From positions 8,990,001 to 9,054,000 of the forward strand of contig OZ249438.1 in assembly GCA_965235115.1 (NCBI GenBank): a stretch of DNA of 64,000 nucleotides, read 5' to 3'. The notes beneath the pieces were generated by a model. The model worked only from the letters and a program-made list of their open reading frames with translations. It was not told the DNA's origin and searched no databases. This DNA comes from Laetmonice hystrix (Eukaryota). Positions 4,007-60,677 of the stretch are shown one piece after another; position 1 is the stretch's first letter; each line of letters starts with the position of its first letter. The position numbers and the translations under genes were made by a program.

Positions 4007-4399
4007 GACAAGGTAACGACAGGAAAGGCTGGAGACAACAGGCGGTCGAGTGTAGAGGGATCCAACTCGAGCGCAACACTCTCTAGGTCTGATTCATTCA
4101 CATTACGACAGAGCAAGAGCACAGCAAGCCTTGATGGCGTAAACTCAGAGTCTCAGGACAGTGGAGGTGGGGCGGGCGGGTCACCCTCGGAGGAGGAGGG
4201 GTCACAGGGTGCACGGGAACAGCCCAGTGAGGAGAGCCTAGTCTCCAACACCACTCATAACCTTACCGTGACCGACGACAATGCCGTCATGAGTCCTGGT
4301 AGTGCAACAGAGCCCTCTAGTGACAAACCCGCTGAAGGTCAACCCTCAGCGCCTGCGACCAATGGAAAGGAATCGGAGGTGGACGACAAGGTTGAGTCG
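4007..4399 (+). CDS. PAPOLA: Poly(A) polymerase exon, Ser/Thr-rich disordered C-terminal region
   Basis: TTCTAG acceptor, 131 open codons (DKVTTGKAGDNRRSSVEGSNSSATLSRSDS...DDKVES), GTAAG donor at 4400, phase 0/0. Confidence 0.82.
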
Positions 4400-4635: not shown

Positions 4636-5303
4636 GTTAGTCCGTTTGTTTTTACCACAAAGTTATAGTTGCACTGGTAGTAGTAATGATTTCCATTTTG
4701 CTGGTTTCTTCACTAAATATCTCAAGATCTACTGAATGTTTATATGTGTACAAGAGTGTTAAAGGGTTTTTTTTTATTACCAATAAATTCTATTTCTTTA
4801 CAAAAATATGCAAGAAAGCTCCCATTCAAGAATGTTCAATTTATCATTAGGTTGTAGACTTTGAGGTATGTAATAAAGTTTGGTGGGACGAGCTGGTGTT
4901 GTATGATTTTCAGTGCTATAATTGTGTTGATATATACAGTGGAAACCCGCTTAACGACCAACCCGGGGAAGCGGGCAACCCGTCATTACGGGCAGTTTGA
5001 TCCAGTCCCGAATTTTTCCTTCTATATTCATGTTTGTGAAACACCCGCCAATACGGGCACTCGCATTGCGGGCAACCCGCCTTGCGGGCGCCTGTTTTCA
5101 GTCCCAACCGGCCTCTTTCAACTCGGTCTCGCGACCACTCTGGCCGCTCACACCTCATACTGCTGGTACCGGCGCCACCCTGGCCCGTTCACACCTAGTG
5201 CTGACTAGGTGCGACCTGTCAATCAAAGTGAGACCACTTCCATAAACACATATCGTCAGTTTTCCTAGGTGAGAGAAACAATGCAACCCACAATGCGGCC
5301 TAC

Positions 5304-42403: not shown

Positions 42404-42500
42404 ATGGAGCTGATATTAGAACGGATGCAGGACGATTGTACGGGTGTACCAGTCCGCACCGTCAAGAGCTTCATGTCCAAGATACCCAGTGTTTTCACAG
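42404..42500 (+). CDS. RGS7: RGS7-like coding exon 2 (DEP domain start)
   Basis: [32 protein letters not shown](G) vs RGS7 [37 protein letters not shown]/GTAAG; 97 nt. Confidence 0.96.
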
Positions 42501-43051
42501 GTAAGTTGACGCCATCCAAGGCCATCCTTGGGCATTACTTGTTTAACTGTGCTGGAAACATGCAATGAAAAACGTGAAACCCGAACTTTCTCGTTAATTA
42601 CAGCTCTAGGCTTATCATGGTATACGATTCTTCCCTAAAGTGAGGCTTTGATTATTTGCGTTGTGTGTGTGTGTGTGTGTTCAGGGCTTGCTATCTCCCA
42701 ACACGAGTTGGGGAGATGAGATGGGCAACTTTCCCGGAGGTTATGGAACGTTGTTCGTATTGTTACGTGTGCTCATGAAGCATTTCGTGTCCAGAAGAAA
42801 ACAAGCATAAAAGGCAAAGGTTGAAATCGTGCCATGCCTTGTGGTTGTTCCTTTAGATTGAAGCTAATGCTTGATGTTGGGTATTCAACGTTTACACATG
42901 AAAGCGAATTGTTTCACCAGTGTGTGTCAACACGTAAATGGGGGTTTTAAAACGGAGGTAATCGTGCATCGATGACAAACTGACCCAGATCAAGGAATTA
43001 TCATTAAGAAAGAATTCCTGTTCTATAGAAATCAGACATCGCAACTGGGTC

Positions 43052-52858: not shown

Positions 52859-53533
52859 CAGGCAGGTCCGGGAAGGTGACGGCCGAGTCGTACCTGTTCT
52901 TACTGCTCAGGTCTAATTAGGCCATGTAGAGGATGCTCACCTCCTAATGAACTTATCAACCACCAGCTACGGCTGGGGGGAAAGACAAAGGTAGCGTGCT
53001 GTGGAGACATGACGGTATAAAGGGGAGAGGACATGGGCACACAGGGGTGCTTGTACGAGCTTCTAATGGCTTGCCCCCGATACACAAGTACAAACCTTTA
53101 TGAAGTCCAGGCTCGTGCGTTCAGACAGCTTTTGCACTCGCGCAGTCATCCTTTATAGCAACTATAGCTATGATTTGTGAAGCCTTTGTAATTAACCACC
53201 TTGTATTGTGGTCACGTAATAGGCCTTTGAAGCACTGTAGCCGCATACTAATGGCCTTTTTATTTTGTAATAACCAATTACATGTACCCTATTGTTACAT
53301 CAAAGCTGATGGCAAATAGATTTTGCGGATTCCTTCAGTGTGAATTTCCGCGACTCGTACAAATGCCGACAACGTATCTTGTCCTTCGTGCGGAAGTTTT
53401 CGAGTGAACAAACATTTAGGGTGCCGTTTCATATGTCCTATAGTATTTTCACTTTTCAGTGAACCTTAACATCTGTTTCTCCAAACATTCTTGATTGTAC
53501 AACAGTCTGAAAACGTTTGCGTTTCTGTTTCAG

Positions 53534-53584
53534 GAACAGATCTCATAAGTTGGATGATGCGGAACCTTGATGTCGAGGACCAAA
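53534..53584 (+). CDS. RGS7: RGS7-like coding exon 3 (DEP domain)
   Basis: (G)TDLISWMMRNLDVEDQ vs GSDIVQWLIKNLTIEDP; TTTCAG/GTGAG; 51 nt. Confidence 0.93.
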
Positions 53585-54926
53585 GTGAGTATATCCACAA
53601 TTTTAGATTCAGTATTCAGTGAGGCTTCGTTTATCCGAACACCTTCGTTTCCCTTTAAATGGGTTCGGATTGTGAAACACTGGATTACTGAATCATCTTA
53701 AATAGAGAATGGTAAAAGAGAGGTTATCTGAAAGTGTTCTGATGTCAGGTATACGGATTAAAGAAGCACGGATTACCGAGGCCTCAATGTCCCAACATGT
53801 AGAAGTCGCCACCAATCCTTTAACAAAAATGTGGTTAATAGTAAAAGGTGTCTTCGAAAAAATGTACGGACAATACGTGTATATATTTGTAATTTCTTTT
53901 TTGTTGTTGAATACGGTAAGAATGCACCAGAGGCGACAATTTTAATTATTTCACCAAAAGCAGTGAGATCATTTAGAAGTTAGAGCAGCATTTGTCGCAT
54001 GTCGTGTTTTCAGAACCCCCTACCCCTGGATCCGCTTGTCTAGTGTAATGTTACATTTACAGAACATTTAGTCTGTAAAGGAGGGAGCCCACGGGACCAT
54101 AATAATGAGGCTGAGGTACTGATCATCCACAGTAATGTCTCAGACAGTCCCCCGCCACCACCCCCCCCCCCCCCCCCACAACACAGAGAAAGTCGTGGGA
54201 AAGTCAAGTTGACCTTTGAGACAAATGTCAAACCCAACCTCCTTGTCCAGATGCTCAATTAAGACAGCCTCAAACCTATGGAGTTAGGAGATTACACTTG
54301 ACGGTGAGCGAGACAATTAATGCCATATTAACCAGCCTTTCGTCTAGGTGAATCTTAAATCATCACGTAATCAATTAGCAAATCTCCCTGATGGAGTGTC
54401 AGAAAATAAAACCAGTCTCGCCGGCCAGTCTGGGCAGCCCTTTGCCCAGTTTGACAGCGGACCCCTGGCTAAATCGCGAAACATTTATCATCCGAGCTTT
54501 GACAAATTTTAAGTTAGAGAAATTGCAAAAGCTATAATATGAAAAGGTAGAATGTGTAGAGCAGTCGCAGTACAAAGAAGGAGCCTTTTGAATGACAGTG
54601 TTGCATCTTGAAATGTTCATTCTCATTGTGTACCTAGGGTTTCTGGCAGGCCTATTTTGTGGCGACCCACTACCTCCCCAGTTGCTCAGTTGCTCATCCC
54701 AAAGGTTTTCTGGGGGGTTTTTCAGGTCCCCCTACCCACCCCAACTCCCCCAACAGGTGAAATTCTCATGGAACCAATTCCATACTGACTGTAAATGCTC
54801 TATAAACCATTTACAAGCTACCAATATAATCTAGAATGTGATAATTACAACTACTTCAGCTCATTAATGTGTGAACTACCTGCATAAATCATGGAAGAGT
54901 GCTGAGGTGTATTTTTTGTCTGACAG

Positions 54927-55033
54927 CGGAGGCCCTCCACCTGGCCCACCTGATGGCGGCCCACGGTTACCTGTTCCCCATCGACGACCACATACTCACT
55001 GTCAAGAACGACAACACGTATTACAGGTTCCAG
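54927..55033 (+). CDS. RGS7: RGS7-like coding exon 4 (DEP domain)
   Basis: [35 protein letters not shown] vs [40 protein letters not shown]/GTAAG; 107 nt. Confidence 0.96.
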
Positions 55034-56940
55034 GTAAGTCTGGTCACGGCACCAAAAGTGGCTCCACCTACATGTGATAACAGTGTACACATCCAGTGTG
55101 GAGTCACCTGCAAAAGGTGATCAAAGTAGGCATATCTGGTGGGGCTCCAACAGGAAGAACTTGAAGACTGTATTCTTTAGCTTAACATTGATCATTCCCA
55201 GTGAGGCACTTTCCAACACATGGTTTTATATGATGAGTCTGAAGGTCATTTTTGGTATTTCCATGTTCTTGATTTGCTCCCAGTGAAGCTGAACTCCATA
55301 TTGCGTACCTGAATCGAACCATTCACTTTTCTAGGTACTGCTTTCGATACTAAGAGAGTACCATGTTCCATGTACTAAAGAGATCCTCAATTGCCTCTCA
55401 AATAGGTTTAATATAGAATATTCTTGAGATAACCAAAGTTTGGCCATTCTGGTCCTTTAAAATTTATTAGGTTTTAGGTAATGTAAGTGATATATTTTGA
55501 CTGTTGTGTACCACTCGGTGATCTCATCAACAGTAAGCATTTTGCTGACATGCGATAGGTACCCGTACAGGGTTTGAGAAAGTCAGGGGCACAGGGGGCA
55601 TGACAGCCGCCTCCTACTGCCTCCTAGATGAGAGTACCCAACGCGTTATGCGGGTTGAAATGGTGCGCTGCGGAGTCGGCAGTATACAGAACTACAGAAG
55701 TAGGCACCATCAAAAATCTGTGTTTTCAAAGGTATAAAATAGGTAAAAGCTCCTAATAGCTCATATAATAGTCAGTTGGGACCCCAGTCTCAATGGCACA
55801 ACTGTTCATAGTCAGAACAAGGTAAAAATAAGGGCTAGGTAGTGGCAGCATGGCTGCTGATAACATGTATATAGCGGCCTATTACGGTCAATTATGGTAA
55901 AGGTCCTAACAACGATGGGGGCCCATAATTTGTTATGAATAGCTGGGTTCTGCCATTAGATGCTGAAAATGATTTGACTCTCAGGTTATGCAATGGTGAA
56001 GGGTGCTCTTTGAGAGTACAGGTACGTGCCGGTGTGCGCACCTAACTGTGTGCACCTACCCTGGTCCCATGTGCACTGTATGTGTACATTATAGGTGCGT
56101 GCCTGTTGTCTCATACCTGGTTCTCCAGCCTGTAAATGTATGTCTCCACACATGTTGCAAGAGACACCTGTACATAAAGAACATGGGTATAAGATCTCAG
56201 CATTCAGTAAGTGGAAGAAAGCATGAACAATAAATGGCAGAAAGAATCAAAGAGATGGAATGTGATCAAGGGACAGGAAGGCACAGGAGACAGACAGGAC
56301 AAGTGGAAGAAAACAAATGTTCCGGTATTCTTATAACAATTTTTTTTCTCATTGTCCCTCAGATCAGGTAAAATCGGAGACATGACAAACATGTTTTCTT
56401 TAATGATTCATGAAGCCATGCAGGCTGATTAGTACTGGCTGTGGACAAGGGGTGGCGGCGGTAGAGTGGGGGGTAATTAATTTTAATGAACCCTAGAATT
56501 CATTGATTAATTATTAACTATTTGTATAGAGGCGGCAACATGAGGGGCTCAGGCGGCCGTACACACCCTGTTAGTGTCTCAAACATGACAGTCCTCATAC
56601 AGATTTTTTTAGAAAGCATCAATGTTCTCCGCTCCGATTTCCTATCCCCCAACCCCTCACCGCAATCGCAGCCGCCAGTGTTTTGTACTCGACAAATAAA
56701 CCAATGTTTCTTGACGAGGTGTTACAGACCGTATCAGACTTCACAGCACCCCCAGACAGACCCTGCTCGGATCGTCTACTATTACTCTTGCCAGATGTAA
56801 ACGTCGTTCTTTGGTTATAGACTCTACAGTTACACAGGGAGTAACGGACAATATAGAGGCAGACTGCACTCCCAATACCAACGTGATTAGTGAGAAGTAA
56901 CTAGAGACTCGAAGATTCTGAACAAGGCTTCTGATTCAGG

Positions 56941-57845
56941 ATACACCCATATAACGGGCCGCAACTAACGGTGACTTGATACCCTGGATAACGGGCCGCA
57001 ACTAACGGTGACTTGATACCCTGGATAACGGGCCGCAACTAACGGTGACTTGATACCCTGGATAACGGGCCGCAACTAACGGTGACTTGATACCCTGGAT
57101 AACGGGCCGCAACTAACGGTGACTTGATACCCTGGATAACGGGCCGCAACTAACGGTGACTTGATAGCCTGGATACACCCATATAACGGGCCGCAACTAA
57201 CGGTGACTTGATACCCTGGATACACCCATATAACGGGCCGCAACTAACGGGGACTTGATACCCTGGATACACCCATATAACGGGCCGCAACTAACGGTGA
57301 CTTGATACCCTGGATACACCCATATAACGGGCCGCAACTAACGGTGACTTGATACCCTGGATAACGGGCCGCAACTAACGGTGACTTGATACCCTGGATA
57401 ACGGGCCGCAACTAACGGTGACTTGATACCCTGGATAACGGGCCGCAACTAACGGTGACTTGATAGCCTGGATACACCCATATAACGGGCCGCAACTAAC
57501 GGTGACTTGATACCCTGGATACACCCATATAACGGGCCGCAACTAACGGGGACTTGATACCCTGGATACACCCATATAACGGGCCGCAACTAACGGTGAC
57601 TTGATACCCTGGATACACCCATATAACGGGCCGCAACTAACGGGGACTTGATACCCTGGATAACGGGCCGCAACTAACGGTGACTTGATACCCTGGATAA
57701 CGGGCCGCAACTAACGGGGACTTGATACCCTGGATACACCCATATAACGGGCCGCAACTAACGGTGACTTGATACCCTGGATACGCCCATATAACGGGCC
57801 GCAACTAACGGGGACTTGATACCCTGGATACACCCATATAACAGG
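56941..57845. repeat. 37/47-bp minisatellite, ~21 copies plus partial
   Basis: ATAACGGGCCGCAACTAACGGTGACTTGATACCCTGG with optional ATACACCCAT insert. Confidence 0.96.
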
Positions 57846-58890
57846 GCTCCACTAATAGGCAACGGACTTGATACCCCTCAGATACCCTGCTGATAAGCAG
57901 AGGAATTCTTATATTTTTTAAGTTTTTGAAATTAATAGCGGATTGTTGAATGGCGGAAACTATCGTCAGCCTAAGATTCCAGCAAATGCAGATAAGTCAA
58001 GGGAGCGCTGTCCTGGAACGCCATCAAAATGTGTCAAATTTTACCCTTTTAAGCTACATATCACATGCGTTCACTATAGTTATGTCCAGTATCGTGGATA
58101 AAACAGGGGAAAAGTAGCAGCGTCGGTTACAATCGCGGCTCGATCCGCCATTTCGCAATGTGGAAAGTTAAAATGGACACTTTGATGGTCTCATTAGCCC
58201 TGTTGAAAGTAGTGCGTGTTGCGCAAAAATTAATTTGACACTTTACATAAATTTTATATTTTGAATTGTTCTGGAAAACCTAATGTATTCACACATTTTA
58301 CCCCCTTTAAGACGAAACTGCAGAACTATTCTATAACCGAAAGATATTGTACAGGTAAAAGGCCGTTGGATAGAGAGAGAAATTGCACCTGTACCTGTTA
58401 CCTGTTAATGAGTAATTAACAACTCATTACGGTCGGTATGTAACGCACTCGGGACATTGACATAACGGAATAGCAGCCAATAACCACCGCAAAGTGTCCA
58501 GTAATGACTGTAAAATGTTGTCTGAATGACATTATATTGTTGTTTTTTTGTGTGTTTTTTTTTGTTTGGGGGGGGGGGGGTAGAATCATTCTATACTAAA
58601 TGCTGTACCCTAGCTGCGTGCAGTGTTCCCAGTGGGGGAAGGGGGGGGGATTCGTTTAAAATTATGAGTGAAGGGCACGTACCCCCACCCCTTGTACAAA
58701 GGGGGCCACGGGGGCCCTCAAAAGTTATATCGAATTGAAAAACTTTAATCAATCAATGAATCAAATGTATGAAGTCTTAAAATAGCCTTTGGGAATCTTA
58801 AAGTCTCTTCCAGCTCTGCCGACAGACATCGTTTTATGGTTAGTTATAGGATTACCAATATAAGTCCAGTCAAATCTTTTTGCTCCCCAG

Positions 58891-58942
58891 ACGCCATTTT
58901 TCTGGCCCTCAAACTATTGGGAGCCGGAGAATTCGGACTATG
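58891..58942 (+). CDS. RGS7: RGS7-like coding exon 5a (DEP-DHEX junction, canonical form)
   Basis: TPFFWPSNYWEPENSDY vs RGS7 TPYFWPSNCWEPENTDY; CCCCAG/GTAAG; 52 nt. Confidence 0.95.
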
Positions 58943-59026
58943 GTAAGTTTCAAAAAGAAGGTCAGTGCATGCTTCCCTCCTCTGCAGGCCAAGTTAAATT
59001 TGTGTGCATTTTTTTGTTTGTTGTAG

Positions 59027-59078
59027 ACTCCGTGCTTTTGGCCTTCCAAGTCTGGCGACCCCGAAAATACTGACTATG
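59027..59078 (+). CDS. RGS7: RGS7-like coding exon 5b (tandem duplicate, mutually exclusive alternative)
   Basis: TPCFWPSKSGDPENTDY; T-rich tract + TAG acceptor, GTGAGT donor; same 52-nt length and phase (0 to 1) as 5a. Confidence 0.88.
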
Positions 59079-59680
59079 GTGAGTGGCCATGCTTTGTCTC
59101 CCTACATAGTTCCTGCGTTCAAGTATAGGAGGCGCTGGTGCGTTCAGATGACGGCGTGTCACTCGGTGCTTCAGTTTTGTTTACCTCCCAAAACCAGATC
59201 CCAGCACACTCCTGACACCTGGTGGTCCCATCCCACACCACTCTGCCTTCCCAGCATTCTACCTTCGGGTTGCTTTAAAAAAACCCATCAACGACATTAT
59301 ATAACTCGCAGCTGAAGAACAAATAGGGAACAAACCAACTTTTTATGTGTTTTACGTTTAGGTGTTTATTATTTATTTGAAACGTTGGTCGGAGCCCATG
59401 GCGTCTTCAGAATCTGTCTCCAAACGTGTGATTTCACATAACATACACGTGTTTTCACGTTCTCAACACATAGAACCGCCTATATACAGTTTGGAACGAA
59501 GCAATATGTTAACAACGGATATCTTTTCAAAATTACATTCATGTAAAGTTAAGACTACCGTCCAGGCAATGACGATTCACCCCAAGAGATTAGTAGCAAG
59601 TGCATTTGAGCCAGACCAGTAGACGCGCAGATGAGAACGAGGCAGAGCATGGTCACTTCACCCGCTGTGAGCACCATGTC

Positions 59681-60535: not shown

Positions 60536-60677
60536 CTGTGTATTTATGCAAACGGACGATGCAAAATAAGCAGAGGTTGGAGTTGGCCGACTATGAAGCC
60601 GAGAACCTGGCGCGCCTTCAAAAGATGTTCTCACGCAAGTGGGAATTCATCTTCATGCAGGCCGAGGCCCAAGCCAA
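60536..60677 (+). CDS. RGS7: RGS7-like coding exon 6 (DHEX); gene continues beyond the window
   Basis: (A)[46 protein letters not shown](K) matches RGS7/EGL-10; CACAG/GTGAG; 142 nt. Confidence 0.96.

Follow-up and report, generated by a model that had tools for sequence, protein, structure and literature searches.

Known pairs of mutually exclusive exons include 5N/5A of SCN8A, 8/8a of CACNA1C, IIIb/IIIc of FGFR2, and 5A/5B of Caenorhabditis elegans egl-15. RGS7 acts as a brake on G-protein signalling in neurons, and the splice diversity of RGS6, RGS7, and RGS9 is known at the N-terminus, in the GGL region, and at the C-terminus; to our knowledge, the loop that joins the DEP and DHEX domains is not among these sites. 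Human mutually exclusive exon pairs that arose by tandem exon duplication have been catalogued, and no RGS gene is mentioned in these catalogues of duplicated either/or exons (PMC9741552, PMC8373072). Full-text literature searches on mutually exclusive exons or splice variants of RGS7 and other R7 RGS genes, and on mutually exclusive exons in annelids, returned nothing on the pair described below, which agrees with the preliminary description of this DNA, where no earlier account was known. The kind of feature is well known, and the RGS7 instance is apparently undescribed.

R7 RGS proteins form obligate dimers with Gβ5 and act as GAPs on Gαi/o. The protein region concerned has been characterized structurally in mammals. 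In the crystal structure of RGS7 with Gβ5, the DEP-DHEX loop is much longer than that of RGS9 and differently shaped, and the orientation of DHEX relative to DEP also differs (PMC6310461). The DEP-DHEX module is considered a flexible regulatory hub, which binds R7BP and caps Gβ5 (PMC6310461), and docking on GPR158 occurs through DHEX (PMC8611064). Mammalian RGS7 and C. elegans EGL-10 (6N9G, 7SHF, 7EWP) share with the gene studied here the order of the DEP, DHEX, GGL, and RGS domains and the exon boundaries around the DEP-DHEX junction. The difference is that the vertebrate and arthropod proteins of the collection searched have a single version of the connecting segment, TPYFWPSNCWEPENTDY, whereas the gene in the window (the whole 64,000-nucleotide stretch of DNA that was analysed) has two, encoded by the neighboring exons 5a and 5b (Table 1).

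We assign a probability of roughly 0.65 to the reading that an annelid-like lophotrochozoan has a tandem exon duplication in its RGS7/EGL-10 orthologue and that the two copies are a probable mutually exclusive pair, for which the use of 5a in mRNA is inferred from its evolution. According to this reading, exactly one of the two exons must be spliced in, and the two protein products of the gene would be identical outside the 17-residue loop connecting DEP to DHEX (RGS7 residues 112 to 128). The downstream 5b would be the ancestral lophotrochozoan version under strong constraint, and the upstream 5a would be an old copy that evolves faster yet remains under purifying selection. The likeness to the known tandem-duplicated pairs is extensive, including neighboring homologous exons that agree in length and phase and of which only one fits the frame, selection on both copies, retention of the pair across species, and the swapping of a short element of a signalling protein. 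In contrast to pairs that are ancient and widespread, however, RGS7 5a/5b is limited to a subset of annelid-like lineages, one of its copies (5a) evolves much faster, and it was identified here in genomic sequence.

Table 1. Positions of the RGS7 exons and associated elements in the window, and of the equivalent exon pair at two further loci
Locus	Feature	Position	Strand	Details
Window	RGS7 exon, N-terminal part of DEP	42404..42502	+	tblastn with RGS7 homologues; boundaries approximate
Window	RGS7 DEP exon (SGTDLISWMMRNLDVEDQSE)	53530..53590	+	tblastn; boundaries approximate
Window	Exon 4, last DEP exon	54927..55033	+	Ends ...NDNTYYRFQ, phase 0, donor GTAAGT; sequence; PDB and Pfam matches
Window	Exon 5a, extra upstream copy (TPFFWPSNYWEPENSDY)	58891..58942	+	52 nt, phase 0 to 1
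Window	Intron separating 5a and 5b	58943..59026	+	84 nt
Window	UGCAUG hexamer	58966..58971	+	24 nt downstream of 5a donor, 56 nt upstream of 5b
Window	Exon 5b, canonical lophotrochozoan copy (TPCFWPSKSGDPENTDY)	59027..59078	+	52 nt, phase 0 to 1
Window	Exon 6, DHEX helix exon	60536..60677	+	Starts in phase 1; Pfam RGS_DHEX 18-61
L091 (ERZ25069296)	Exon 5a (TPFLWPSNSTDPENYEY)	4674-4725		
L091 (ERZ25069296)	Intron between 5a and 5b			71 nt
L091 (ERZ25069296)	Exon 5b (TPCFWSSKCGEPENTEY)	4797-4848		
L090 (ERZ21781341)	Exon 5a (TPFLVPSTTWNPENYEY)	4318-4369		
L090 (ERZ21781341)	Intron between 5a and 5b			331 nt
L090 (ERZ21781341)	Exon 5b (TPCFWPSKCGEPENTDY)	4701-4752		

The host gene and the place of the duplicated exon in the protein are given by the flanking exons. 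Exon 4 aligns to RGS7 residues 77 to 111 (PDB 6n9g, 7shf, 7ewp), where it is about 80% identical to the bovine and human proteins, and the duplicated exon therefore corresponds to RGS7 residues 112 to 128. In terms of the Pfam profiles, exon 4 covers DEP positions 38 to 72 of 72 and exon 6 covers positions 18 to 61 of the 100 in RGS_DHEX; since exon 4 runs to the last DEP position and the DHEX coverage of exon 6 begins at position 18, the duplicated exon accounts for DHEX profile positions 1 to 17. In two RGS7 homologues, one of which is that of Owenia fusiformis, DEP ends 2 residues before DHEX starts. The GGL (PF00631) and RGS (PF00615) exons lie just past the end of the window (G000:C3:9054538-9063439), and these downstream exons align with RGS7 homologues up to the C-terminus. 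Judged by these matches to DEP, DHEX, GGL, and RGS exons, the gene is an RGS7/EGL-10 orthologue and thus an R7-type RGS gene. At the protein level, exon 6 does not differ from mollusc and annelid sequences, and the gene as a whole is about 70% identical to the RGS7 of molluscs, nemerteans, and annelids; no RGS7 found in the protein collection exceeded about 72% identity to it. A vertebrate origin of the DNA was rejected on account of the exon 6 sequence and of 5b, which is of the lophotrochozoan type. In an AlphaFold2 model of Owenia RGS7 without Gβ5, the segment is a loop from whose last three residues the DHEX helix begins, with pLDDT below 50 over most of the segment.

Exons 5a and 5b lie next to each other, are homologous, agree in length and phase, and have intact splice sites. 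The acceptor of 5a ends in ctccccAG and that of 5b in gttgtAG, a pyrimidine tract precedes the AG in both, and the donors are G/GTAAGT for 5a and G/GTGAGT for 5b (the slash marks the exon end). The two copies are identical at 36 of 52 nucleotides and 11 of 17 amino acids, and different codons are used at 7 of the 11 identical residues. Either exon alone between exons 4 and 6 gives an open, RGS7-like frame. Inclusion of both produces a TGA inside 5b and skipping of both produces a frameshift, so that neither co-inclusion nor co-skipping is compatible with the reading frame and the exons are therefore mutually exclusive at the protein level. The preliminary description had placed two homologous 52-nt exons with good splice sites, 84 nt apart and both in phase 0 to 1, at the DEP-DHEX junction of an R7 RGS protein, and it had stated that including both or neither shifts the frame. 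The sequence is exactly as claimed, the location at the junction is exact by the Pfam positions, and the R7 RGS identity and the frame logic are confirmed as well. About 1 kb upstream of exon 5a, intron 4 of the gene carries a minisatellite array (56939-57847) with units of 37 and 47 nt, higher-order periods of 94 and 299 nt, and matches of 86 to 99%, at which short-read contigs pile up or break.

A pattern search showed that the 627-Mb genome holds only three exons of the 5a/5b type: apart from 5a and 5b themselves, there is a single one, in a paralogue located on a different contig. A further look-alike of exon 5 on contig C4 was rejected as a chance match with stops around it. The paralogue is a second R7-type RGS gene (G000:C1:16929261-17001279, minus strand), which has a single exon-5 type exon of the Trp type, SPYFWPSQNWEPDNVDY, at L006:6961-6911, and no duplicate of this exon was found in the interval of about 9 kb between its exon 4 and exon 6. 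The possibility that 5a is a recent copy of the paralogue's exon was ruled out by a nucleotide identity of 37/51 and a pS of 0.62.

Comparison of the segment across animals identifies which copy is the standard one. Every lophotrochozoan protein in the collection carries TPCFWPS[RK][CS]GEPENTDY (the Cys3/Gly10 type); this set comprises about 75 annotated mollusc isoforms, from bivalves, gastropods, cephalopods, and a chiton, together with Lingula, two nemerteans including Lineus, and Owenia. Exon 5b is identical to the segment of the annelid Owenia fusiformis at 16 of 17 residues, and gutless-oligochaete contigs encode TPCFWPSRV[SAC]EPENTDY. In arthropods, a priapulid, a tardigrade, and vertebrate-type proteins, the segment reads TPYFWPSNCWEPENTDY or differs little from it. 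Trp5 is invariant across 36 aligned R7 RGS proteins. On this comparison, 5b is the ordinary exon of lophotrochozoans and 5a is the addition. The preliminary description, which took the vertebrate sequence as its reference, had proposed a switch from NYWE to KSGD with the loss of a conserved Trp. For this lineage, that polarity is upside down: the Trp-less 5b type is the normal and only annotated lophotrochozoan exon, and 5b thus does not "lose" a conserved Trp. A third class of segment, TPCLWPS[NK][NS]..., occurs in transcript-derived proteins, in an intron-less metagenome locus (L082), and in the flatworm Macrostomum, which indicates that Cys3 and a non-Trp position 10 are not confined to molluscs and annelids. 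The springtail Folsomia candida has a single RGS7 segment version, TPYFWPSNYWEPENSDY, that is one residue off exon 5a and is presumably convergent.

The distribution of the pair was followed through the exact 40-residue open frame of exon 6, which led to seven more genomic loci, of which two, L091 and L090, carry the ordered pair (Table 1). All four of their exons are 52 nt long, with AG acceptors and GTAAGT or GTGAGT donors. Phe3 is common to the upstream copies of the window, L091, and L090, and Cys3, Lys8, and Gly10 are common to the downstream copies. In nucleotides, 5a of the window is closest to 5a of L091 (38/51), and 5b of the window is closest to the other 5b exons and to single exons (42/51). 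The same ordered pair with copy-wise matches indicates that the duplication predates the split of the three lineages, whose exon sequences are 77 to 86% identical. The upstream copies have also diverged, with Trp10 of the window 5a replaced by Thr in L091 and Trp5 replaced by Val in L090, and the latter loss could mean decay in that species. Beside the RGS7 locus, L090 contains a retrotransposon pol region with RVT_1, RNase H, and integrase (L090:10583-12123).

Most of the sampled lophotrochozoans are without the pair, and this was counted against the two-isoform explanation. No such pair lies between exon 4 and exon 6 in the Lingula locus (L004), in at least 11 contigs of gutless-oligochaete hosts and several other metagenome contigs, or in an annelid-like contig with tiny introns (L092), and in Mytilus edulis (L003) no second copy was found within 14 kb upstream of the single exon. 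On the question of whether related genomes have a degenerate copy or none, which the preliminary description had raised, the pair is intact in L091 and L090, though absent in these other lophotrochozoans. In M. edulis (GCA_905397895.1), a weak 5a look-alike, KTPF-WPQNIAVLENCE, lies 1.5 kb upstream of the single exon 5 (L003:12593-12640); it matches at 9 of 17 residues with one gap, has the wrong length, and is without a proper donor, and it is explained either by chance or by the decay of a copy from an older duplication. A hAT-type transposase gene lies beside this Mytilus RGS7 locus (L003:3467-9077).

Selection on both copies, which the preliminary description had proposed, was examined with the Nei-Gojobori method. 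Between 5a and 5b of the window, pS is 0.97, pN is 0.16, and pN/pS is 0.16; the differences occupy 9.5 of 9.8 synonymous sites, which are thus saturated, and 6.5 of 41.2 non-synonymous sites, and the synonymous excess has a binomial P of about 1e-3. Between species, pN/pS is 0.28 to 0.33 for the 5a orthologues, with a synonymous excess at a P of 0.01 to 0.03 per pair, and 0.07 to 0.20 for the 5b orthologues, where each test covers 17 codons and the three pairwise comparisons depend on one another. Among the single-copy exons of other species, there are 0 to 2 non-synonymous changes. At the protein level, 5a evolves 3 to 4 times faster than 5b. The proposal thus held for the orthologous pairs in the two further assemblies, with pN/pS below 1 for both 5a and 5b. 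Together, these 17-codon tests and the retention of length, frame, and splice sites in three species argue that 5a has long been a coding exon under purifying selection, with weaker constraint than 5b.

The rival reading that survives best, although we consider it rather unlikely, takes 5a to be an old duplicate that is unspliced, or spliced at noise level, with all functional protein using 5b. It gains from the fact that the exon of all annotated lophotrochozoan RGS7 genes agrees with 5b and not with 5a, and from the greater divergence of 5a, including the missing Trp5 of L090. Sequencing-run searches with a 5.8-kb genomic stretch and with the last coding exon plus the presumed 3' UTR matched only three DNA-type runs of one sample, in which no splice joints were seen. 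However, a relic of this age would hardly be expected to look as 5a does: its 52-nt length, its open frame, and its AG and GTAAGT sites have all been kept in three species despite saturated synonymous sites, 8 of its 17 residues are unchanged in the three species, seven of them at family-conserved positions (TP...PS....PEN..Y), and its pN/pS of about 0.3 is well below 1.

The TGA that double inclusion creates inside 5b allows a different role for 5a, in which its joining to 5b would introduce a premature stop and lower RGS7 output via nonsense-mediated decay, with no alternative protein segment being made. The 84-nt intron between the copies looks spliceable, with A-rich sequence located some 30 nt away from its acceptor; it has no YTNAY branch-point consensus. 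We nevertheless regard this role as improbable, since the coding sequence of a poison exon is free to vary, whereas 5a retains the family-conserved residues, shows a synonymous excess between species, and has the exact length to substitute for 5b. That two alleles of one exon were placed in tandem by assembly or haplotype collapse is a general possibility with nothing further in its favor and can be counted as already refuted, because independent Logan contigs from three DNA runs of one sample span 58601-59283 or further unbroken, with zero variants in 5a/5b, and so establish that the tandem arrangement of both exons and their intron is real, because 16 of 52 bases differ between the copies, and because the same arrangement is present in two further assemblies.

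With the mutually exclusive pair as the preferred reading, the sequence around the exons offers some candidates for how the choice might be made. RBFOX would favor the upstream exon and disfavor the downstream exon from a UGCAUG located between them, and egl-15 of C. elegans is an example of RBFOX-controlled exon choice. The window resembles this arrangement in having a single UGCAUG between 5a and 5b in the expected position, where the preliminary description, which had pointed to RBFOX, had placed it. The hexamer is the sole copy within 300 nt on either side, with a window average of 0.33 per kb, and has a chance of about 3% of occurring in 84 nt. The difference from RBFOX-controlled exons is that it is missing from the equivalent introns of the other species: in L091 and L090, the mid intron and the 300 nt flanking it on each side contain neither TGCATG nor GCATG. 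RBFOX control is therefore without comparative support. A steric block by an intron too short to splice was rejected as a conserved mechanism, as the mid-intron lengths of 84, 71, and 331 nt in the window, L091, and L090 do not fit it. A search for RNA pairing returned only one 19-nt inverted repeat with 84% complementarity (59082-59100 with 59639-59657), which touches the 5b donor region. Inside the 84-nt intron, a pyrimidine tract followed by CAG forms a strong-looking acceptor-like element, cttccctcctctgcag (58971-58986). This element may act as a decoy 3' splice site or bind a pyrimidine-tract protein, and no similar element of L091 aligned with it.

A more far-reaching scenario, which we regard as a long shot, is that 5a/5b may be the remnant of an either/or switch of spiralian or greater age, with 5a derived from the Trp-type loop of ecdysozoans and vertebrates and 5b from the Cys/Gly-type loop of lophotrochozoans, and with most lineages having kept one of the two. 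Where both were kept, the loops would send RGS7-Gβ5 to distinct membrane partners (R7BP-like or GPR158-like) depending on the neuron.

It may reasonably be supposed that an alternative loop at this position retunes the anchoring, stability, or GAP control of RGS7. The practical weight of the finding is limited, as it concerns non-model animals and a lineage-restricted event in which the expression of 5a is predicted from its evolution. Two loops that can replace each other and have been preserved by selection in several worm species would nevertheless amount to a ready-made natural experiment on the role of the loop, and the pair would bring a regulator of GPCR signalling into the small set of genes that are tuned by duplicated either/or exons.
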